From sequence record MN047793.1: DNA of 64,000 nucleotides; one strand, 5' to 3'. This document shows positions 6,984-17,553 of this stretch, in pieces; position 1 is the stretch's first letter, and every line of letters starts with the position of its first letter. The position numbers and the translations under genes were made by a program. The notes beneath the pieces are model-generated. The model saw nothing but the letters and a program-made list of their open reading frames with translations, made no database searches and was not told where the DNA came from.

Positions 6984-7303
6984 TCAGCCACTTTAGCCAC
7001 AACAGCATTTCGGACAATCTCAAGACAGTTTTTAGCTGACCACTGGTCAACCGAACTATCAAACTTTGCAATAGTAATGAACTGCTCAAGGTTACGCAAA
7101 GCTACCGACAATAATGGATGTTCCTTAGCAAGCTTACTAGATGGGTGCAATGGATCAGCACCAATATAAATCGCTTCCGGAGCTTCAGGCCATTCCTTTC
7201 GTAGCGTGGCAAACTCGCCCACATTCCACAAACGAAGAAATTCCAATCCATCATCAGTTTCAAGGGCAAATTGAATTGCCGCCACACTTGCATCATTATT
7301 CAT
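6980..7303 (-). CDS. Hypothetical phage protein
   Basis: ORF coupled to its neighbours. Confidence 0.6.
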   Translation of the reverse strand: MNNDASVAAIQFALETDDGLEFLRLWNVGEFATLRKEWPEAPEAIYIGADPLHPSSKLAKEHPLLSVALRNLEQFITIAKFDSSVDQWSAKNCLEIVRNAVVAKVAE

Positions 7304-7521
7304 CAGTTATTCCTCATAGCGTTAATCATAGCATCCCACACCTTACGGGTCTGTGGGTCCAAGGTACTATATGGCTCACTTTCTGTCCATGAGCCTTCAC
7401 CATATGCAGAGCATAGCACTGTCGGCTGTGGACATGCATGCGAACCAGCAGTCACCATTTTATCTGTCGGAATAATTGGGACCAATACATAACCTTCCGG
7501 AACCGAATATAATTTATTCAT
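7303..7521 (-). CDS. Hypothetical phage protein (PEGYVLVP motif, Eaa/DUF551-like)
   Basis: VPEGYVLVPIIPTDKMVTAG motif, common in small phage proteins. Confidence 0.55.
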   Translation of the reverse strand: MNKLYSVPEGYVLVPIIPTDKMVTAGSHACPQPTVLCSAYGEGSWTESEPYSTLDPQTRKVWDAMINAMRNN

Positions 7522-7850
7522 CGGTCATTTCCTTTAGGGTATAAGGGGTCTTCTACTCCAGTGATCGCATTAATGTCCATTCGACTTAACATACTCTTCT
7601 GAGTACGTAATTCTAATACTACTTGATCCTGTAGTAACACCAATGCACCCATGACCTCATGCAAATGCTCATGAGCAATAACCTTATCTACTCCAGCAGC
7701 AATTGCTAAAGCATGTAATGCATATACTGCATTCGTACCATCTTCATAGGTAGCAGCAGCAATCGCACGGCGTAGGTCTAATGTAGCATTAGCCGTTCGT
7801 CGGATATCCTCATCCGTTACTTGTTTATTTGTATCAATGCGCTTAGACAT
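7518..7850 (-). CDS. Hypothetical protein
   Basis: Probable start MSKRID at 7850 overlapping the upstream stop. Confidence 0.55.
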   Translation of the reverse strand: MSKRIDTNKQVTDEDIRRTANATLDLRRAIAAATYEDGTNAVYALHALAIAAGVDKVIAHEHLHEVMGALVLLQDQVVLELRTQKSMLSRMDINAITGVEDPLYPKGNDR

Positions 7851-8038
7851 CACCAATTCGCCATCGCCATGAACAATAAAACCACCGTTATTACCAGCCA
7901 AATAAAGCCAAGAAACGCACGGCCCACTGGTGCCCATTGGCTAATATCAAAACTCGCAGCAGCGAATGCGCCAGCCATGTAAAAAAGCATAGCACACAAT
8001 ACCGATGCAACAACTACCGCCAATAAATTATTCTTCAT
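7850..8038 (-). CDS. Small two-TM membrane protein
   Basis: Two hydrophobic helices. Confidence 0.55.
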   Translation of the reverse strand: MKNNLLAVVVASVLCAMLFYMAGAFAAASFDISQWAPVGRAFLGFIWLVITVVLLFMAMANW

Positions 8039-8394
8039 GTCCTATCTTCCATATCAATAGCAGCACGTGGACGATTATACAAAATATTACTGTAAATCTC
8101 TTCCACCATTTCCTTCGTCACATAATTACTTGTCCGCTTCCGGTTATAATTATACATGACTTCAGTAATATAATCATCATTTAATTCACGAGGTACTACC
8201 CGATATTCCGATGGAACTTTAGGTGCACGAGATACCAAATTATTATCACTAACCGTCAAGGCCTCAGCCAAGGCCAAACAATCATCGTCAGCCGCTTCCC
8301 ATTGGTCAGGTGACCATGTAAATTTGTCCAGCGCTCCACGTAGCCAAAAGACAACATTGTCTATTAACTGACGTTCATCATGGGTAATGTTCAT
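8035..8394 (-). CDS. Hypothetical protein
   Basis: Coupled ORF. Confidence 0.55.
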   Translation of the reverse strand: MNITHDERQLIDNVVFWLRGALDKFTWSPDQWEAADDDCLALAEALTVSDNNLVSRAPKVPSEYRVVPRELNDDYITEVMYNYNRKRTSNYVTKEMVEEIYSNILYNRPRAAIDMEDRT

Positions 8395-8846
8395 GCAGTC
8401 GCCACCGAATCATCAAGACCATGCTTCAGTGCAATCTCACGAAGACCATCGGTCACCTTAGAACGCCATAACGCCACATCCGTAATGTCAAAGATATTAT
8501 TACCATCATGAACTTGCTGAAACTTCGTCAGAAATTTCAGTCGTGAGTTACACTCACCATTTTCAACCGGCTCACCATCAAGATATAGGGCACTATACAC
8601 CGTAAATATTCCTGCAATGTTCAAGATATAATTATTTTGAACACGACTACTAACCTTCTTAAGCTCATCTTCACTCATAATCAAACCGACTGCACATCGC
8701 AAACCGTTATCTCCAGAGTAAGCACACGTGTCATAACCCGAATGCATACTAGAACAACCCTGCGCAAGCAATCGCACCGAAATGGTGTCAAAAATCTCCT
8801 GCTCAGTCATCGTCTCTACAGCAAGCTTCAGTGAGGTGTCCATCAA
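8391..8846 (-). CDS. Conserved-type phage hypothetical protein
   Basis: QEIFD...LLAQG...CAYSGDNGLRCAVGLI pattern; directly downstream of a consensus promoter. Confidence 0.6.
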   Translation of the reverse strand: MMDTSLKLAVETMTEQEIFDTISVRLLAQGCSSMHSGYDTCAYSGDNGLRCAVGLIMSEDELKKVSSRVQNNYILNIAGIFTVYSALYLDGEPVENGECNSRLKFLTKFQQVHDGNNIFDITDVALWRSKVTDGLREIALKHGLDDSVATA

Positions 8847-8872
8847 ATTATATCCTATGTGTGTAGGCCTAA

Positions 8873-8901
8873 ATTATAAATGATCAGTCACAACCTGTCA
8901 A
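8873..8901 (-). promoter_or_regulatory. Consensus sigma70 early promoter
   Basis: TTGACA-17-TATAAT on the minus strand. Confidence 0.85.
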
Positions 8902-8904
8902 CTA

Positions 8905-9048
8905 CTAATTGCCTAACGACCATAGACAATACATCACACCATGACCAACACTACGACACTCATCCCACTGCCAGCGGATACACCCACCAATCAATAACAC
9001 AAAAACCAATACCCCAGCACCAATCCACAATCGCTCATACCACTTCAT
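8905..9048 (-). CDS. 47-aa membrane miniprotein (not in the ORF track)
   Basis: MKWYERLWIGAGVLVFVLLIGGCIRWQWDECRSVGHGVMYCLWSLGN; RBS GAGAGG; own promoter upstream. Confidence 0.65.
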   Translation of the reverse strand: MKWYERLWIGAGVLVFVLLIGGCIRWQWDECRSVGHGVMYCLWSLGN

Positions 9049-9073
9049 ACACGCCTCTCTTTAGTATTAGCAA

Positions 9074-9102
9074 ATTATAACCAATCGTACCATAACTGTC
9101 AA
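9074..9102 (-). promoter_or_regulatory. Consensus sigma70 early promoter
   Basis: TTGACA-17-TATAAT on the minus strand. Confidence 0.85.
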
Positions 9103-9148
9103 CTACCATCATTCCCACCCAATACCACAGACCCCCGGCCTACCTCCC

Positions 9149-9209
9149 ATTTTACACTATAATTATTTTTTGTCAACCCCTTGACAACACAACTCATTTG
9201 CGGTATGCT
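9149..9209. promoter_or_regulatory. Divergent promoter pair
   Basis: Minus TTGACA(9171-9176)-16-TAAAAT; plus TTGACA(9181-9186)-17-TATGCT(9204-9209). Confidence 0.7.
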
Positions 9210-9242
9210 CTATCTGCCTAGAGCTATACCTGAACAACCAAA

Positions 9243-9408
9243 TGTTAAATTTCCGTTATTGTTAAAATAGCGTTAGGAAATTGTTAACAAATCGTTAAAT
9301 GTTAAAATATCGTTAAGAAAAGGTTATGATTTCGTTAACTTAACACTTTCTTAACATCTCAGCCCATATGTTAAAATTTCGTTAGAGGACCAGCCCACAT
9401 GACTTAAC
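9243..9408. repeat. Helically phased GTTA iteron-like array (candidate origin or protein-binding field)
   Basis: GTTA at 9244, 9255, 9261, 9272, 9283, 9294, 9301, 9312, 9323, 9334, 9370 and 9381 (11-bp steps within groups); inverted TTAAC pair at 9340 and 9351. Confidence 0.75.
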
Positions 9409-9544
9409 ATATCCATAAGAGGGTGTCAACAGATTCCCGACAAACGGTCAGTCGTAAGGTACTGATTCCTAAAGGGTTTGTTCCACTGGGAGAAATATAT
9501 GCATTCGTTGGTGAGAACCTATACGAACTAAAATTACACATAAA

Positions 9545-9562
9545 TTCTTTAAGCTTAAAGAA
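9545..9562. repeat. Perfect 18-bp palindrome
   Basis: TTCTTTAAGCTTAAAGAA. Confidence 0.8.
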
Positions 9563-9662
9563 ATAGAAATGATATAGTTCCTATATTGATATGATATCAT
9601 AGTGATATCACAATGATCTTAAAATTATAGAAGTAGGTGTTGCAAGGTTTACGAAATATTTC

Positions 9663-9691
9663 TTGCATTTCCTGTACAAATATCTTATAAT
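9663..9691 (+). promoter_or_regulatory. Sigma70 promoter driving the paralog array
   Basis: TTGCAT-17-TATAAT, 75 nt upstream of the first array ATG. Confidence 0.75.
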
Positions 9692-9765
9692 TACTCTACT
9701 AATTTCCTGTTTCAATACCTTCTCATTCGAACTAATAAGTCCTAACGCAAGCGTTACCCTTTATT

Positions 9766-10131
9766 ATGATCACCTTACCGTCTGGTTTTGCTACTACTAT
9801 TAAGATACTTCCCAAAGAGGATGGCGATTTTTATCATGATTTGTATGTGTTGTGTAACAGTATGGATTACACCTATAGTTATCTTAAGTTTTGTTCCGTG
9901 AGTCGTATTCAGGAATGGCATTGGTGTGAGGGTGATGTGTCTATTAACATGGTTAATGGCAAGCGTGATGACGGAGTTAGCATTTACATCAATGAGCGAT
10001 TGGTTGGTATATTTGCTACTGATAGCAGGATGTATCCGAGGCTGTATCCTATTCATAACCGTCGTGTAGAGGGTGGTGATGTTTATACAGCTATGTTGGC
10101 ATTCATTAAGAAGTGGGAGATTGGGGTATGA
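9766..10131 (+). CDS. Array paralog 1 (subtype A)
   Basis: NSM..Y / QEWHWCEGD / IYINERLV / AFIKKWEIGV. Confidence 0.8.
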   Translation: MITLPSGFATTIKILPKEDGDFYHDLYVLCNSMDYTYSYLKFCSVSRIQEWHWCEGDVSINMVNGKRDDGVSIYINERLVGIFATDSRMYPRLYPIHNRRVEGGDVYTAMLAFIKKWEIGV

Positions 10132-10448
10132 CGCTACCGTCCCCTGTTAATGGCGAAATACAATTCTATGTTGGGTTGTTCTTTCATGAGTTGTATCGGT
10201 TGTTGAACTCCATGGAGCACACCTATCATTATCAGTCTAAGGAATGGATGTGGTGTGAAGGTGATAACTGTATTAACGTAGTGAGCGATAATGGTGAAAT
10301 TATCATTCACATCAATGAGAGAATAGTTGGCAGATATATGATGGGTAGTGGTACTCCTAAGTTATGGTCTCATGATTTGGTTATAGATGATGGAGATGTT
10401 CATACAGCTATGTTGGCATTCATTGATAAGTGGGGAATTGGTGTATGA
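10128..10448 (+). CDS. Array paralog 2 (A)
   Basis: ATGA overlap; EWMWCEGD, IHINERIV, FIDKWGIGV. Confidence 0.8.
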   Translation: MTLPSPVNGEIQFYVGLFFHELYRLLNSMEHTYHYQSKEWMWCEGDNCINVVSDNGEIIIHINERIVGRYMMGSGTPKLWSHDLVIDDGDVHTAMLAFIDKWGIGV

Positions 10449-10819
10449 ATCTGGCTTCGTCTATTAATGGTGACATCAACCATGATGGAGACATCTATCG
10501 TGAGTTAGTAAGATTGTTCAACTCCATGGAGCATAGATATACTCATCAATACATGTTTCAGGAATGGCATTGGAGTGCGGGTGATAACTACATTAACATA
10601 GTGAACGATTTTGGTAAAATTATTATTCACATCAATGAGAGAATAGCTGGTCGATTTACGATTGATACTGTCCGGATTCCTCATGGCATAATTGTAGAGG
10701 ATGGAGACGTTCATATAGTTGGTAGATTTACGATTGATAGTGCTGGTACTCCTAAGTGTAGTCATGACGTTCATATTGCTGTGCTGGAATTTATTGACAA
10801 GTGGGAGATTGGTGTATGA
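10445..10819 (+). CDS. Array paralog 3 (A, with internal duplication)
   Basis: ATGA overlap; GRFTID and DVHI each occur twice. Confidence 0.8.
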   Translation: MNLASSINGDINHDGDIYRELVRLFNSMEHRYTHQYMFQEWHWSAGDNYINIVNDFGKIIIHINERIAGRFTIDTVRIPHGIIVEDGDVHIVGRFTIDSAGTPKCSHDVHIAVLEFIDKWEIGV

Positions 10820-11151
10820 CGACGCTACCTTCGCCTTTTACGGGTGAGATACAATTCTATCTTGAGTTCTATCGAGTGTTGAACTCCATGGAGTACACCT
10901 ATCATTATCCTGCTCAGGAGTGGCAATGGGGTGAGGATGATGTGTCTATTAATGTGGTTAACAATCCAATTAACAATGCCATTGATAATGGGATTAGCAT
11001 TTATATCAATGAAAGGCTAGTTAGTAAATTTATAATGGATAGGCACTGGAGTCCTAAGTCTTTATGGGAAAAAGAACTTCGTGTCGTAGAGGGTGTAAGT
11101 GTTCATACTGTGTTGTTGGAATTCATTGATAAGTGGGGAATTGGTGTATGA
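10816..11151 (+). CDS. Array paralog 4 (A)
   Basis: ATGA overlap; QEWQWGED, IYINERLV, FIDKWGIGV. Confidence 0.8.
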   Translation: MTTLPSPFTGEIQFYLEFYRVLNSMEYTYHYPAQEWQWGEDDVSINVVNNPINNAIDNGISIYINERLVSKFIMDRHWSPKSLWEKELRVVEGVSVHTVLLEFIDKWGIGV

Positions 11152-11498
11152 ACGTGGTAAGTCTTTCTTTTTATATTGATGATTTCATACTTGATGAATG
11201 GTTCAAGATTCTCGCCAATTCTGAATTCACTTATATTTGGCATGGTGAAACAATCTGTTGTACTCAGGAATGGCTACGTTGTGAGGGTGATAGCTCTATT
11301 AATATTGTTAACACCCGTACGGTTACAACGAGTTTTGTTAAAATTTATGTTGATGAAGAATTGGTTGCGGAGTTTGATCATGATGCGGATCATTTCTTCG
11401 TATTAACTACTGATGGTATCTCAAAGACTCCAGTTGCGTTAGATGAGGTTCGTTCTAATGTGTTGTCATTTATTGAGAAGTATGGTGTTGGTGTATGA
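11148..11498 (+). CDS. Array paralog 5 (subtype B)
   Basis: NSEF, TQEWLRCEGDSSINIVN, IYVDEELV, EVRSNVL. Confidence 0.8.
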   Translation: MNVVSLSFYIDDFILDEWFKILANSEFTYIWHGETICCTQEWLRCEGDSSINIVNTRTVTTSFVKIYVDEELVAEFDHDADHFFVLTTDGISKTPVALDEVRSNVLSFIEKYGVGV

Positions 11499-11857
11499 AC
11501 GTTGTACATCTTATTTTTTATAATAACGATATGTTACGTAATGAGTGGTTAGGATTGCTTGGTAATTCTGAATTCATCTATGAGTGTTGTGAAGATGTAT
11601 TGAGTTATACTAGTACTCAGGAATGGCTACGTTGTGAGGGTGATAGCTCTGTTAATATTGTTAACGTTGTTAACCATCGTATTGTTCTTGGGAATACTGT
11701 GAACATTTATATTGATGAAACATTGGTGTGTCAGTTTCATCATTATGCGGGTCGTTTCGAGCTAACTGATGGTACGTCTAATAGGCAAATTGCATCAGAG
11801 GTTGTTCGTTCTAATGTGTTGGAGTTCATTAATAAGTGGAATATTGGTGTATGCTAA
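11495..11857 (+). CDS. Array paralog 6 (B)
   Basis: TQEWLRCEGDSSVNIVN, IYIDETLV, FINKWNIGVC. Confidence 0.8.
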   Translation: MNVVHLIFYNNDMLRNEWLGLLGNSEFIYECCEDVLSYTSTQEWLRCEGDSSVNIVNVVNHRIVLGNTVNIYIDETLVCQFHHYAGRFELTDGTSNRQIASEVVRSNVLEFINKWNIGVC

Positions 11858-12222
11858 CTGTTCCTGTGTATAGTCCTTTGGTTATGGGACGTATCATCTA
11901 TGATGTACCGTTCTATCGTGAGTTGAATCAGTTGCTCAACAGCATGGAGCCATATTATAATTATCATGTATATACGGATATTCACTGTTATGAGTGGTAT
12001 TGGAGTGAAGGTGATATGTCTGTTAACTTGGTTAACCTAGGTAGTGTAGTAAGCGTTTACATCAATGAGAGGCTAGTTAGTCAATTTACTATGGCTGATA
12101 CTTCCAAGAGTAATGGTACAACCAATTCTATGGCGATTTATTGTAATAATGTGTATAAAACAGTTGAACACGTTCATACTGCTGTGCTGGCATTTATTGA
12201 CAAGTGGAATATTGGTGTATGA
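11851..12222 (+). CDS. Array paralog 7 (A)
   Basis: NSME, EWYWSEGD, VYINERLV, FIDKWNIGV. Confidence 0.8.
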   Translation: MLTVPVYSPLVMGRIIYDVPFYRELNQLLNSMEPYYNYHVYTDIHCYEWYWSEGDMSVNLVNLGSVVSVYINERLVSQFTMADTSKSNGTTNSMAIYCNNVYKTVEHVHTAVLAFIDKWNIGV

Positions 12223-12611
12223 GTACTGACGTGTTTGGATATCCTTGCGTGTCTCACTATTATGATAGTGGTAATGTATTATGTGTTGAATGGTTAACGA
12301 TGCTCCCTGATGAGGAATTTGATTACATTATCACTAGACAAGCTGGTGATAATTATAGTGACACTCATACTCAAGAATGGGTTCGATGCGAAGGCGATAG
12401 CTCTATTAATATTGTTAATATCATTACTATAAATGTTGATGGTAGATTTAGTCAGGTGAAAATTTATATTGATGAAACATTGGTTGCTCAGTTTGATCAT
12501 AATGCCGGCTATTTCGGTTATGATGGTACAGGGTTAAATAAAGGTTTGTCGTTAGATGAGGTTCGATCTGAAATTCTGTCATTCATTGAGAGATGGAATA
12601 TTGGTGTATGA
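12219..12611 (+). CDS. Array paralog 8 (B)
   Basis: TQEWVRCEGDSSINIVN, IYIDETLV, FIERWNIGV. Confidence 0.8.
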   Translation: MSTDVFGYPCVSHYYDSGNVLCVEWLTMLPDEEFDYIITRQAGDNYSDTHTQEWVRCEGDSSINIVNIITINVDGRFSQVKIYIDETLVAQFDHNAGYFGYDGTGLNKGLSLDEVRSEILSFIERWNIGV

Positions 12612-12964
12612 ACGCTGAAGAGTCGGTTTTATATGGTACTCGGTTCTATCGCGAACTATATGCAATACTTAACAGTATGGACTATAAGTCGGTATATATT
12701 TCTGTCGATGACGCTGTATGCCAAGAATGGCTTTGGAATGATGATAACAATACAATTAATGTGGTTAATTTTAACCAAGATACTGAACTTCTCTTTTACA
12801 TCAATGAGAGGCTATTTGGTAGCTTTAATGACCCTTCCTATTATGACAGTAACGGTAGTAGGGCGAGAATACATCCTTGGGTTATCAAAGGTCTTTATTC
12901 AGTTAATGGGAAACTACCCGTTGCCATGATGGAATTTATTGATAAATGGGGTATTGGGGTATGA
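12608..12964 (+). CDS. Array paralog 9 (A)
   Basis: NSMDY, QEWLW, FYINERLF, FIDKWGIGV. Confidence 0.8.
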   Translation: MNAEESVLYGTRFYRELYAILNSMDYKSVYISVDDAVCQEWLWNDDNNTINVVNFNQDTELLFYINERLFGSFNDPSYYDSNGSRARIHPWVIKGLYSVNGKLPVAMMEFIDKWGIGV

Positions 12965-13314
12965 GTAGTGCTGTTCCACACTTTAGTGTTAACAGTCCAT
13001 TTACTTCTCGGTTCTTTTATGAACTGTCTAGGTTTTTTAACAGCATGGAGATGGCTTACCGAATTACCTACTATGACGGTACTTTAAACGACCCCTTCGT
13101 TACAGAATGGATATGGTGTCATGGTGATAACTCTATTAATATCGTTCATCCTAACCATGGTACTCATGTTAGCATTTACGTAAATGAAAAACTTGTTGGT
13201 AAATTTAGTCACAATGCTTTATTGTTAAAAGCTACTCATTCTGAAGGCATTCCTGTAGAAGAAGTGCATTCAGAGATGGTAGACTTCATTAAACGCTGGT
13301 GTATTTGGATATGA
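12961..13314 (+). CDS. Array paralog 10 (A)
   Basis: NSME, EWIWCHGDNSINIV, IYVNEKLV, FIKRWCIWI. Confidence 0.8.
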   Translation: MSSAVPHFSVNSPFTSRFFYELSRFFNSMEMAYRITYYDGTLNDPFVTEWIWCHGDNSINIVHPNHGTHVSIYVNEKLVGKFSHNALLLKATHSEGIPVEEVHSEMVDFIKRWCIWI

Positions 13315-13655
13315 ATGATATAAAATTTCGGTTTATTACCAATAGTGAAATGCCGTTCTTTGTACGTCAGCTTAGTAAGCTTTCTTCTGATGTTATATGG
13401 TTGATGAATTCTTCAGTCAGATGGAATGGTGACGATATTTCTGTGTCTATTGAAAAGAGCCGTGACGGTAAGCTTATGATTTATATTAATGAACAGATGG
13501 TGGCTTGTTATATTATCGGTAATTTAGTAGTCCCATCATCCTCTGATCTTTTCTATTATGAATCATTTTTTCAAATGAATGGTACACTTCAGGTACCAGC
13601 AGATAAAATGCTCAGATATTTGAATGAGTTTATGGATAATTGGGGTAGACTTTGA
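13311..13655 (+). CDS. Array paralog 11 (diverged)
   Basis: WNGDDISVSI, IYINEQMV, EFMDNWGRL. Confidence 0.75.
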   Translation: MNDIKFRFITNSEMPFFVRQLSKLSSDVIWLMNSSVRWNGDDISVSIEKSRDGKLMIYINEQMVACYIIGNLVVPSSSDLFYYESFFQMNGTLQVPADKMLRYLNEFMDNWGRL

Positions 13656-13731
13656 ATATCGAAGTCAGGGGCTAGTAAACGGTCTATAATTGTGTTATGC
13701 TACTATCCTAATAGGACATTGGGTGACCATA

Positions 13732-14100
13732 ATGATTGACATCAAAATTGAATTTAAAAATCCTTATTTTATTGCAGATTTGGCTAGATTTAACGTAGAG
13801 CTGACCACGATGCGTGAGGGTAAACCTAACACGTTGCCAGGATTTTGGTCTGTTGGGGACGATTCTGTTGAAATAATTGTGCTCGATGCCAATACTGTAT
13901 GCTTCATGATTAATGAAGAAGTTAAAGCTGTGTACTATATGGAGCCACGCGATATAGATTTACAAACACGACAGCCTATTGGAATGTTAATATCTCGTCA
14001 CCGGTTTATTGAACGCCAAGGCAATGTGTACAAACGTCATCCAGATGACCAGTACATGAATAAAGTACTGGAATTTTTGAACACGTGGAGTCGTGAATGA
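13732..14100 (+). CDS. Array paralog 12 (diverged)
   Basis: WSVGDDSVEI, FMINEEVK, EFLNTW. Confidence 0.7.
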   Translation: MIDIKIEFKNPYFIADLARFNVELTTMREGKPNTLPGFWSVGDDSVEIIVLDANTVCFMINEEVKAVYYMEPRDIDLQTRQPIGMLISRHRFIERQGNVYKRHPDDQYMNKVLEFLNTWSRE

Positions 14101-14468
14101 CATCTGGTCCAACGGTAAAAATATCGGATGATGATTCAAAACGGTTCATGGAAGAACTATTCATGTTTCATTCTAGTGGGCAATTGTATAATTATTGGTC
14201 ACTCGATAATGATTCAGTTCTTATCTGTATTCCGAATAACGTAGATGTTGTGCGGGCCAAAAATGCTGAAATTGAAATACTGGTCAATGAAACATCGATT
14301 GTGAGATTTATAGGAAGTGTGGCGTTTATCCGTGAGTTATTCCGCAATCTTAATTGTAGAATTTATGATAATGTAACATATAAAAGTAATCCAAGTAACA
14401 TGATGATTCACTCGAATGACAATTATATGAAAAAATTATCAGAATTCTTAAAACGTTGGACTCCCTAA
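14097..14468 (+). CDS. Array paralog 13 (diverged)
   Basis: WSLDNDSVLI, ILVNETSI, EFLKRW. Confidence 0.7.
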   Translation: MTSGPTVKISDDDSKRFMEELFMFHSSGQLYNYWSLDNDSVLICIPNNVDVVRAKNAEIEILVNETSIVRFIGSVAFIRELFRNLNCRIYDNVTYKSNPSNMMIHSNDNYMKKLSEFLKRWTP

Positions 14469-14469
14469 G

Positions 14470-14811
14470 ATGTATCCCGATTGTATTCCGATAGAAATCC
14501 AGTTTAAAAATAACGAATTTTTTGATGACCTGTCCTATTTTTTGATGGGCTTCTGGAGTCATGAAAATAATAGTGTAAATATCGAACTTATAGATGATTC
14601 CGTTTACACAGATACCATAATCATCTACATAAATGAAGTAAAGGTATCTACCTATTATGTATATGGTAGAAAACATCCCGGTGAGTTATTTCACCTACCA
14701 ATGACTTTAAGGGTTTATAATGGATTTGCACGACCTAACATAATTCGTGATCCTCACGTTTATTTTCAAAAGATTATTGAGTTTGTAGATAAATGGGGTG
14801 GGGCTATCTAA
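14470..14811 (+). CDS. Array paralog 14 (diverged)
   Basis: WSHENNSVNI, IYINEVKV, EFVDKWGG. Confidence 0.7.
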   Translation: MYPDCIPIEIQFKNNEFFDDLSYFLMGFWSHENNSVNIELIDDSVYTDTIIIYINEVKVSTYYVYGRKHPGELFHLPMTLRVYNGFARPNIIRDPHVYFQKIIEFVDKWGGAI

Positions 14812-15203
14812 TGAAGACATTTAGTATGAATGATATAAATGATATGCTATTTTTTAATGATTTATATTCATTTACAAAAAAGTGCTATGACAGAAACTCT
14901 CCTCGTTCTCCAGTACTTTATAATTATACGAATGGTATACAGGAATGGTCGTGGTGCAATAATTTGCACGCAGTACTCATCAGTGATGATACTACTAAAC
15001 ATCAGGCTAGTATTTATGTTGATGAATTACTTATGGGCGAGTTACAATATACAATTTCTGATAGACGCAACATAGTCGTTGACAACATTCCCCTGATTAA
15101 TACTGACGACTTTTACGATGAAATTTTGAAATTCATTAATAAATGGGATATCATACCACAATCATCTATGGATTTAGAAAATGAATTCCCCCATAAAAAT
15201 TAA
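14811..15203 (+). CDS. Array paralog 15
   Basis: QEWSWC, IYVDELLM, KFINKWDI. Confidence 0.7.
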   Translation: MKTFSMNDINDMLFFNDLYSFTKKCYDRNSPRSPVLYNYTNGIQEWSWCNNLHAVLISDDTTKHQASIYVDELLMGELQYTISDRRNIVVDNIPLINTDDFYDEILKFINKWDIIPQSSMDLENEFPHKN

Positions 15204-15528
15204 TGATAATGATAATGACCTGTTCTATGAACAACTCTATCCGTTGTTAAAAATGATGGAGTATAATTTCGACTCAACTAAATCAAGCGAAGTATTTTCA
15301 TGTTCTAACATTGATGATTCCGTTGTAATTTGTAGGGAATATTTAGCTGGTAAATACTTATTAGATGAGCTATACATTTATATAAATGAACGCCTTGTGG
15401 CGTATTACAGTTTGTATATATGTCCTACTCCATTTTATCTGGGTCCTGTGATAGTCTCGGTAGATCATGATGAATTTATGAATAATATCAATAAATTTGT
15501 GGATACCTGGGGTAGACTTGACACCTAG
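15181..15528 (+). CDS. Array paralog 16
   Basis: MMEY, IYINERLV, KFVDTWGRL. Confidence 0.7.
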   Translation: MNSPIKINDNDNDLFYEQLYPLLKMMEYNFDSTKSSEVFSCSNIDDSVVICREYLAGKYLLDELYIYINERLVAYYSLYICPTPFYLGPVIVSVDHDEFMNNINKFVDTWGRLDT

Positions 15529-15545
15529 ATGGGAAGTGATATAAT
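15518..15545 (+). promoter_or_regulatory. Internal sigma70 promoter (extended -10)
   Basis: TTGACA-16-TATAAT with TG at -15/-14; ATG only 5 nt after the -10 box. Confidence 0.7.
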
Positions 15546-15550
15546 TAGGT

Positions 15551-16111
15551 ATGAACAGGCCATTATATGATAATTTATATCAACAGATTTTATCCAAACT
15601 AAACAGTGACATCAGTAATGAGTTACTTATTGCCTCTGGTGTAATAACCCATACTACACCATACAAAAACTTCATTTTTAACAAACATCCTTACAAAAGT
15701 GTAGTTCCATTTAATAACGTACGGAATATGCACACCAGTGATACACCGTGTTATACCATTAAGACAGAAGACGCAATGGTCATGCAGTTACGGTTGCGCC
15801 GCCTTTATATGTCATTTTGCGTTAAAACTAGACTTGAATCCTATGGATTAAAATATGTTTCTTTCGCCTGCTCTCGGCAACCTAAAATTGTAGAGGCAGT
15901 AACTGATTTAAACATAAGTAATGGTGGTTCACTGGTGTTGATAGTCATCAATGAAAGTACATTTGTATTTCTAATAGATGTTGACATCACAGAATTAAAT
16001 GATGACGTTATTACAGAATCATATATTGATGATGAAGAACTATTTTCAGAATTAAATGAGTTCTTTATTGATTATACTGGATTTAACGTATCTGAAATGT
16101 TAGAGAGTTAA
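15551..16111 (+). CDS. Hypothetical protein, probable distant array member with N-terminal extension
   Basis: IVINESTFV and ELNEFFIDY echo the array motifs. Confidence 0.6.
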   Translation: MNRPLYDNLYQQILSKLNSDISNELLIASGVITHTTPYKNFIFNKHPYKSVVPFNNVRNMHTSDTPCYTIKTEDAMVMQLRLRRLYMSFCVKTRLESYGLKYVSFACSRQPKIVEAVTDLNISNGGSLVLIVINESTFVFLIDVDITELNDDVITESYIDDEELFSELNEFFIDYTGFNVSEMLES

Positions 16112-16112
16112 T

Positions 16113-16505
16113 ATGCCATATAATTTCCCTATCGCATCCAAGAGATTCATCATGACCAATGATGTCATGACTCAACTTCAGGAATATGAAGTTCAGGAAT
16201 TCTTACTTAGGATTGCTAGATTATGTGCCAGTAATCCAGATAATAAATTCAATGATGTTGTCTTCTTCCCCAGAGATAACGCAAAAATATATAGTCCTGA
16301 ATATGATACCACCACATGTTTGGTGCTAATGGATGGATATTTCAAACTGACCTTGAACGAACAGAAGTTTTCTGTGCGTATACCAAATATGTATGCTAAT
16401 ATTTTAGAATTCATAGATTCATATACAATTGTTGAAGGTTACGATGGAGAAATATTCAATCACGTAATGAAATTTATTGAAGACTACTGGATCATCAAAT
16501 CATAA
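16113..16505 (+). CDS. Hypothetical protein, probable distant array member
   Basis: LTLNEQKF and VMKFIEDYW. Confidence 0.6.
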   Translation: MPYNFPIASKRFIMTNDVMTQLQEYEVQEFLLRIARLCASNPDNKFNDVVFFPRDNAKIYSPEYDTTTCLVLMDGYFKLTLNEQKFSVRIPNMYANILEFIDSYTIVEGYDGEIFNHVMKFIEDYWIIKS

Positions 16506-16518
16506 GAAGTGCTAACGC

Positions 16519-17061
16519 ATGCGTTATAAACAATTTAACATGGTACAAGGTTCCGCTTATTCGGAATTAACACCATTACAGCAGGATTATTATGTAATGC
16601 TGGTTCGTATTCGTAAATTACTAGAATATGGACTTGGATATTCCGTTAATTTAAAAACTAGACTGCGAATAAAATCTAAAACTGGTCAAGGTCACGGGTT
16701 AGTTCAGCTATATGAAGTGACATTTTCAAATGGATTTATGATTACCTATGGCACAAACAAATCTGGCTCTTACTATTTTGAATTAGATTTTTCATGCTAC
16801 AAGTTGGTAGTGTCAAAGCTGTTCCATGGAAAGCCAGAGTTGGTTGCTTCTAGAGATTTAATGTTTAGAATCAATCATACTATCTTCTGTAAGGCTCTTG
16901 TTGATAAAACTAATGATATTGATGAGTTAGAGTTAGAATCACTACTTCAGGAGTTCTATGACGACTATATGGGGGAAGATGCGTACGGAGAGCTTATACG
17001 CAATTCCATATTGAATGACAGCCTAACTCCTGCGGAGCTACAGCGTATGACGCCATGGTGA
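16519..17061 (+). CDS. Hypothetical protein, possible distant array member
   Basis: FRINHTIF and LQEFYDDYM. Confidence 0.55.
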   Translation: MRYKQFNMVQGSAYSELTPLQQDYYVMLVRIRKLLEYGLGYSVNLKTRLRIKSKTGQGHGLVQLYEVTFSNGFMITYGTNKSGSYYFELDFSCYKLVVSKLFHGKPELVASRDLMFRINHTIFCKALVDKTNDIDELELESLLQEFYDDYMGEDAYGELIRNSILNDSLTPAELQRMTPW

Positions 17062-17113
17062 GCTTACAGAGCTTCCTATGGCGTTTTACGTACATTGATG
17101 GTATACTGCCAAA

Positions 17114-17407
17114 ATGAATTCATTTAAATTACTTATTAACTTCATTGAACAGTGTAAGTTACATTCAGGAAACGGACGTTACATTGCTACCAATGTCAAT
17201 GACATCGCTTCATTTGCTGATGTGTCTATCCCAATGGAAGTAAAGATTACCGAAAGTGGTATTAGCATTGAAAAGCCAGCAGTATCATATCTCTCTATAA
17301 ATTGGGATAGGATTCCTGAGAAATATAAACGGGAAATCGTAGACATTCTCACTGAAGACGAATTGGACAAGCAATTAGAGCGTGAGTTACGATCATTCTT
17401 TACGTAA
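17114..17407 (+). CDS. Hypothetical protein
   Basis: ORF after extended -10 TGgTATACT (17099-17107). Confidence 0.55.
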   Translation: MNSFKLLINFIEQCKLHSGNGRYIATNVNDIASFADVSIPMEVKITESGISIEKPAVSYLSINWDRIPEKYKREIVDILTEDELDKQLERELRSFFT

Positions 17408-17456
17408 TGCTTCAGCTATACCAAACAATCCCATAAACATCATCGACACACTAAGG

Positions 17457-17488
17457 AATGCTGCATTATTATATGCGGCATTTTTTAA
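17457..17488 (+). terminator. Intrinsic terminator ending the array operon
   Basis: AATGCTGCAT...ATGCGGCATT followed by a T-run. Confidence 0.6.
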
Positions 17489-17553
17489 TTCTAGCAAAGA
17501 ATAAATGAAAAGGGCTGCGGATAGCAGCCCAAATATCACTCTAAAGATTAATT

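Follow-up and report, generated by a model that had tools for sequence, protein, structure and literature searches.

A recurring 30-nt junction motif in a tandem gene array of Xanthomonas phage Xoo-sp13 as a probable by-product of gene duplication

The gene array and its junctions

The 64,000-nucleotide (nt) stretch of DNA analyzed here (the window) was 100% identical to the jumbo Xanthomonas phage Xoo-sp13 (MN047793.1, 309 kb). Window positions, obtained by subtracting 62000 from record positions, are used unless the record is named. The subject is a 30-nt motif that recurs at gene junctions within an array of 16 small paralogous genes (g1–g16, 106–130 amino acids [aa]), arranged in tandem on the + strand at 9766–15528 with a period of ~350 nt per gene unit. 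The genes were delimited as open reading frames (ORFs) and could be aligned over their full length. A profile built from the 16 paralogs matched exactly these 16 places in the whole phage record (E-values 1e-21 to 1e-35). With 16 members side by side on a single strand, the locus qualifies as a tandem paralog array, for which at least three neighbouring homologues are required. The array and its genes were as follows:

9766–15528, +, tandem array g1–g16 (ORFs, alignment, profile search)
9766–10131, +, g1, 121 aa, without an upstream Shine-Dalgarno (SD) sequence (ORF, anti-SD scan)
10128–10448, +, g2, 106 aa, mosaic with a g4-like 5' part and a g3-like middle (ORF, breakpoint test, AlphaFold [AF2] model with a predicted local distance difference test score [pLDDT] of 79)
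10445–10819, +, g3, 124 aa, with an internal duplication (ORF, repeat analysis)
10816–11151, +, g4, 111 aa (ORF)
11148–11498, +, g5, 116 aa, subfamily B (ORF, tree)
11495–11857, +, g6, 120 aa, subfamily B, stop moved by one codon (TGC, then TAA) (ORF, tree)
11851–12222, +, g7, 123 aa, A-type between B-type neighbours (ORF, tree)
12219–12611, +, g8, 130 aa, subfamily B (ORF, tree)
12608–12964, +, g9, 118 aa (ORF)
12961–13314, +, g10, 117 aa, tail ending in I-W-I (ORF)
13311–13655, +, g11, 114 aa, divergent member (ORF, alignment)
13732–14100, +, g12, 122 aa, preceded by a 76-nt spacer (ORF)
14097–14468, +, g13, 123 aa, ATGA overlap with g12 (ORF)
14470–14811, +, g14, 113 aa (ORF)
14811–15203, +, g15, 130 aa, 1-nt overlap with g14 (ORF)
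15181–15528, +, g16, 115 aa, 23-nt overlap with g15 (ORF)
15551–17061, +, g17–g19 (186, 117, and 180 aa), distantly related, C-terminal helix motif in the D-Y form (motif comparison)

The GenBank record lists only ~13 coding sequences across 9766–15528 (record 71766–77528), most of them shortened by a start at an internal Met codon, and leaves several genes out. From the sequence, 16 complete genes are supported instead, the full-length starts being favoured because of the conserved N-terminal helix, independent gene calls on a Logan contig, and the structure model. As a by-product of the analysis, the annotation was thus shown to be incomplete for a clean 16-gene array. The paralog tree was mostly unresolved outside g5/g6/g8 and g2/g3, and the order of duplications was not readable from it.

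The motif was searched with the consensus given in an earlier note on this DNA, used as a pattern on the + strand with up to 3 mismatches; 100 dinucleotide-preserving shuffles served as a control. The consensus was matched at nine sites (10102, 10419, 10790, 11122, 11469, 11825, 12193, 12582, and 12935; 0–3 mismatches) and never in the shuffles. The recurrence described in the note was therefore reproduced at nine of its ten sites, and the tenth (13285) has degenerated, with 4 mismatches counted from the sequence. As had been claimed, sites 10419 and 11122 carry identical copies, and the exact match extends to 32 nt.

10102–10131, +, junction copy 1, g1/g2 (0 mismatches)
10419–10448, +, junction copy 2, g2/g3 (same sequence as copy 4)
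10790–10819, +, junction copy 3, g3/g4 (pattern search)
11122–11151, +, junction copy 4, g4/g5 (same sequence as copy 2)
11469–11498, +, junction copy 5, g5/g6 (3 mismatches)
11825–11854, +, junction copy 6, g6/g7, stop lost, ATG retained (1 mismatch)
12193–12222, +, junction copy 7, g7/g8 (pattern search)
12582–12611, +, junction copy 8, g8/g9 (1 mismatch)
12935–12964, +, junction copy 9, g9/g10 (pattern search)
13285–13314, +, degenerate junction copy 10, g10/g11 (4 mismatches)

The motif comprises the last nine sense codons of g1–g10 (F-I-x-K-W-x-I-G-V), the TGA stop, and the ATG of the next gene, which overlaps the stop as ATGA. This overlap was present at 11 of the 15 array junctions; boundaries of other kinds were overlaps of 7 nt, 1 nt, and 23 nt and spacers of 1 nt and 76 nt (one each). 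Overlaps of 4 nt or 1 nt were also frequent outside the array, according to the record annotation and gene calls. At g6/g7 (11825) the stop was replaced by TGC followed by TAA, which gives the 7-nt overlap, and the downstream ATG was unaltered; the constraint there is therefore on the start codon. The anatomy proposed earlier, with the C-terminus, a purine-rich stretch, the stop, and the next start in one 30-nt block, held apart from the displaced stop at 11825 and an SD-like run that was only moderate. The best duplexes with the anti-SD sequence upstream of the junction ATGs had energies of −6 to −8.8 kcal/mol (top 5–17% of background positions) and were weaker at g6–g10. Because this pairing is only moderate, reinitiation at ATGA is the likely translation route of the downstream genes, and translational coupling of successive genes is plausible. 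A terminator scan gave no convincing candidate inside the array, no promoter inside the motif was reported by the promoter scan, and 8800–17500 had no Rfam match.

The encoded proteins and their relatives

An AF2 model of g2, based on the paralog alignment (mean pLDDT 79), consisted of a five-stranded sheet preceded by one helix and followed by a C-terminal one (residues 91–101, pLDDT ~91); the junction motif corresponds to the end of that last helix and a short tail. In the alignment of all 16 proteins, F98 was invariant and W102 nearly so. A constant helix-sheet-helix scaffold is common to the proteins, and the loop that links the last strand to the C-terminal helix is hypervariable. The ratio of nonsynonymous to synonymous divergence (dN/dS) was 0.25–0.7 for the scaffold and near or above neutral for the loops and variable parts. 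In the closest pairs, scaffold dN was 0.17–0.24 against a dS of 0.32–0.89, indicating constraint at the protein level.

The array proteins had no significant match in Pfam or PHROG. Fold searches (PDB, BFVD, AFDB clusters, and ESM Atlas), as well as an atlas feature search and a PDB sequence profile, returned nothing significant except the phage's own proteins. A p32/frataxin-like topology was considered and set aside (weak matches, E 0.3–1.4, template modelling [TM] scores below 0.4). Only the phage's own proteins were recovered by tblastn against phages, by a search of 5.8 billion proteins, and by a hidden Markov model search of 1.84 billion representatives, and a search with the motif pattern found nothing in IMG/VR or JGI metagenome contigs. 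Judged by these searches, the array appears to be a poorly annotated expansion of an ORFan family.

The nearest relative is phage XacN1, whose flanks are syntenic and whose intergenic region is colinear with that of Xoo-sp13. As in the XacN1/RAS14-type loci, the Xoo-sp13 array lies between a tRNA-His guanylyltransferase block and a glutaredoxin/macro-domain block, as judged from the flank matches. The XacN1 array (AP018399, ORF134–149) occupies the syntenic place with genes of 102–200 aa, 13 of which were aligned. The XacN1 genome has been described (PMC5852040), and a term search of the text of that paper gave no mention of the array. In XacN1, E-F-M-E-F-x-x-D-Y recurs ten times at 65–86% nt identity and stands 3–45 nt ahead of variable stops, tails, spacers, or overlaps. 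The D-Y form was also found in three proteins of Stenotrophomonas phage RAS14 and in g17–g19. The C-terminal motif [ED]-F-[ILMV]-x-[DKNT]-[WY] is present in both array alignments, in g17–g19, and in the three RAS14 proteins. Full-length similarity to XacN1 was marginal (best match E=5e-4, in a 26-protein set), and in the hhalign comparison of the two arrays the helix alone was aligned (E=0.003, probability 9.8%). Since the helix motif recurs in XacN1 and RAS14 with different gene boundaries, it appears to be an old protein feature that persists where the boundary differs. The C-terminal helix thus connects the family with the XacN1 and RAS14 arrays.

Two further observations concern these relatives. 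In g18 (16152–16505) the C-terminal helix motif occurs twice in succession, as I-L-E-F-I-D-S-Y and V-M-K-F-I-E-D-Y. RAS14 has, at 7064–14890, a stretch of ~30 same-strand genes of 70–85 aa with mostly 4-nt overlaps, syntenic to the leftward genes; this stretch may be another tandem family.

Origin and maintenance of the junction motif

The junction was compared with the rest of the gene unit at the DNA level. A repeat finder returned four periodic families per gene unit, namely the junction and the Q-E-W...V-N, I-Y-I-N-E, and N-S-M-E blocks. Among 10-codon windows the junction ranked first (nt identity 0.754, aa identity 0.656) and the internal block E-G-D-x-S-I-N-I-V-N next (0.725 and 0.616), and third-position identity was 0.65 in the former and 0.66 in the latter. 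The codons for F, D, K, and both G differed between motif copies. The motif Ile was always ATT, as it was in two of three conserved internal Ile columns. The last sense codon ended in A without exception, because the overlapping ATG requires that A. A column-wise test of the junction against other conserved columns was not significant (p=0.05–0.28). The junction is special at the DNA level only marginally, and the extra synonymous conservation that the earlier note had proposed to look for was essentially not found, given the varying codons, the third-position identity of the internal block, and these p values. Motif similarity between junctions tracked the coding flank of the upstream gene (Mantel r=0.46, p=0.006); it did not track the downstream gene (r=0.08).

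Traces of exchange between the paralogs were located as follows:

10230–10234, +, best-supported breakpoint inside g2 (maximum chi-squared, permutation p=0.0004)
11260–11312, +, internal g5 block, likely gene-conversion tract (98% identity to g6 11613–11665, p<0.0005)
10643–10781, +, intragenic duplication of the variable segment of g3, in which G-R-F-T-I-D ... D-V-H-I is encoded twice (repeat analysis)

The first ~105 nt of g2 were 80–90% identical to g4 and its middle 77–87% identical to g3. The g5/g6 tract spans 53 nt at 98% identity, compared with 71% for the two genes as a whole (p<0.0005), and includes an internal 38-nt repeat, the longest exact one in the array. Exchange between paralogs has occurred, and the significant traces are all inside genes. 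The copies are old, with pairwise nt identities of 44–73% and a dS of 0.36 or more, and no young copies were present among them.

These data are best explained, with a probability of about 0.8, by regarding the 30-nt junction as the coding 3' end common to members of a tandemly duplicated family, joined to an ATGA overlap, and so as a by-product of duplication and no dedicated recombination site. The motif is predicted to encode the end of the C-terminal alpha-helix (F-I-[DKEN]-K-W) and a short tail (x-I-G-V), and it runs into a 4-nt ATGA whose bases serve both the stop and the next start. The motif would recur every ~350 nt because the gene recurs, and purifying selection on the protein would maintain its similarity. 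Two local constraints add to this: a final A is required in the last sense codon for the downstream ATG, and the W/E/G/I/G codons form the moderate SD-like stretch. This stretch and the overlap probably couple the translation of each gene to that of the preceding one. The array probably grew by ordinary homology-dependent unequal exchange between paralogs, for which any conserved block can serve. Because exchange would be possible at any block, the significant traces are internal, and the copies are old, the junction is unlikely to be a dedicated recombination site. Conserved gene ends and an overlapping stop and start suffice to explain the recurrence, without recourse to a new mechanism.

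Several observations weigh against this explanation. The junction is the best conserved single 10-codon window, and its synonymous-codon match was 77% (73% without the ATG-forced Val), higher than the 61% found elsewhere. Seven of the eight motif Lys codons were AAG, though the array prefers AAA. The neighbours g6, g7, and g8, which belong to two subfamilies, share a 17-nt junction variant (p=0.007, uncorrected, 45 pairs), and the 3' end of g2 reverts to a g4-like sequence. Similarities of the upstream and downstream flanks were uncorrelated over junction pairs (r=0.10), as a cassette model also predicts. The evidence base consists of one genome and one contig-level data set, in which rare rearrangements are invisible.

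Some of these points could reflect concerted evolution, in which short-tract gene conversion among neighbours would occasionally homogenise gene ends on top of protein selection, the junction being non-functional as a site. The variant shared by g6, g7, and g8 over the subfamilies (17–20 nt) fits such a process, as do the last informative sites, g4-like in g2 and g8-like in g6; conversion is clear elsewhere in the array (the g5/g6 tract), and a RecA-like gene is present in the phage genome. However, no junction signal survives correction for the 45 pairs, neighbours have the variable junction codon in common no more often than under random order (3 cases, ~2 expected), and the clearest conversion tract is internal, which makes this process an unlikely source of the motif. 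Slightly less credence still is given to a broader version, in which recurrent short-tract conversion or unequal exchange would homogenise the gene ends and the population would carry variants with genes lost, doubled, or re-ordered at their boundaries, as an 'accordion' of a diversifying host-interaction family beside the long terminal repeat. Some room is left for it because of the shared g6/g7/g8 variant, the resemblance of the end of g2 to g4, and the lack of correlation between flank histories.

The module proposed in the earlier note would be a dedicated recombination and coupling device, in which exchange at the junctions deletes, duplicates, or swaps whole genes in the manner of an integron and selection acts on the DNA itself. 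The first rank of the motif in conservation, the two copies identical over 32 nt, the uncorrelated flanks, and the A-type g7 amid B-type genes with one junction variant common to all three would agree with it. Yet the synonymous sites vary, with a third-position identity equal to that of an internal block, and the junction is one of four conserved blocks. The 30/30 identity of the g2 and g4 junctions is not significant given the 73% overall identity of these genes (p=0.09). No hairpin or conserved fold was found at the junction, the consensus of ten 100-nt windows giving −1.2 kcal/mol and a trivial 6-pair stem. The absence of an integrase, noted earlier for the window, extends to the whole 309-kb genome, where PF00589 (tyrosine recombinase) had no match, although all 14 control genomes scored, and no serine recombinase was found. 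All 'cassettes' are paralogs, unlike integron cargo. Besides the lack of young copies, no rearranged joint was present in the contigs of the only public run; these contigs end at the 32-nt and 38-nt exact repeats, and rare variants are invisible in them. XacN1 retains the helix motif and not the boundary, and boundaries differ in RAS14 as well. With the significant traces of exchange internal, a dedicated module is very improbable, and the integron-like reading is not sustained.

Equally improbable is an explanation at the RNA level, in which the motif would be conserved chiefly for ribosome binding or mRNA processing at the downstream gene and not for the protein. The purine-rich stretch with moderate anti-SD pairing before each ATG, the preference for AAG over AAA, and the invariant final A could speak for it. 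Against it, the pairing reaches only the top 5–17% of background and weakens at g6–g10, no conserved RNA fold or Rfam match was found, similarity among the motif copies goes with the upstream gene rather than the downstream one, and XacN1 and RAS14 retain the amino-acid motif at places where it does not abut the next start.

Comparable systems and the neighbourhood of the array

Lineage-specific tandem paralogs are known from jumbo phages, as in Bacillus phage G with its ~35-copy zinc-ribbon expansion (PMC7824862). The array resembles such expansions in having many diverged copies of one small gene in a genome. It differs in that the family has no Pfam or PHROG match and, in the protein libraries searched, only the helix-motif link to XacN1 and RAS14 outside its own phage. 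Genes that overlap as ATGA and are translationally coupled are classic, for example trpB-trpA in Escherichia coli and many phage operons. The array shares with them the 4-nt overlap with a ribosome-binding stretch in the last codons of the upstream gene; in Xoo-sp13, in contrast, the paralogy of the genes makes the overlap recur many times, and the coupling is a putative one.

Integron cassette arrays likewise have a short recurring element at gene 3' ends, one coding strand, and apparently a single promoter. Unlike integrons, with attC and IntI, the array has no attC-like hairpin, the genome has no integrase, and the element is coding sequence; integron cassette genes are unrelated and independently acquired, whereas all 16 genes here belong to one family. 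In poxvirus 'genomic accordions' (K3L amplification), a tandem array arises by unequal recombination and its copies are young and near identical. Tandem genes of this origin, able to diversify, are the point of likeness to the array; the Xoo-sp13 copies, however, are old and far diverged, and the contigs of the one run showed no copy-number variation.

A further parallel is the XacN1 ORF134–149 array, which also lies just past the end of a long terminal repeat and has the same gene size, one strand, and a homologous helix motif recurring in the DNA. Its motif ends in D-Y and not K-W, variable tails, spacers, and overlaps follow, and full-length similarity is marginal. The Xoo-sp13 array starts ~245 nt beyond the position (~9520) homologous to the end of the 65,875-bp terminal repeat of XacN1, which places the family just beyond a presumed terminal-repeat boundary. 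Because of the constant scaffold, the hypervariable loop, and this adjoining terminal repeat, the array proteins are guessed, with low confidence, to be a diversified host-interaction set; diversified proteins for host takeover or anti-defence may reasonably be looked for in this family.

Upstream of g1, two elements were listed:

9663–9691, +, possible promoter (TTGCAT, 17 nt, TATAAT), recognised by eye, sub-threshold in the scan
9734–9763, +, palindrome-containing leader element directly before the g1 ATG (genome repeats, kept in XacN1)

The leader element, with its palindrome (CTAACGC, two A's, GCGTTAG), lies 10–25 nt upstream of start codons. Three further copies of the element are present in the genome (record 19007, 21744, and 26362), and it also precedes the first XacN1 array gene (66064–66119). 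Either a 5' hairpin or a regulatory site may be represented by it. Promoters with a perfect 12/12 match to the sigma-70 consensus were found on the minus strand (two, within 8873–9209) for the leftward genes and at 15518–15545, directly before g17 (one).

The Logan contig over 9187–10447 had a word depth of 1552, compared with 854–933 in downstream contigs. The 309-kb record of Xoo-sp13 may hold a collapsed long terminal repeat that ends just before the array, which the depth figure fits imperfectly. An intergenic 40-nt tandem pair lies within 9260–9338, and a cluster of GATATCA-type repeats (9575–9625) is colinear with the XacN1 sequence just beyond the end of its terminal repeat.

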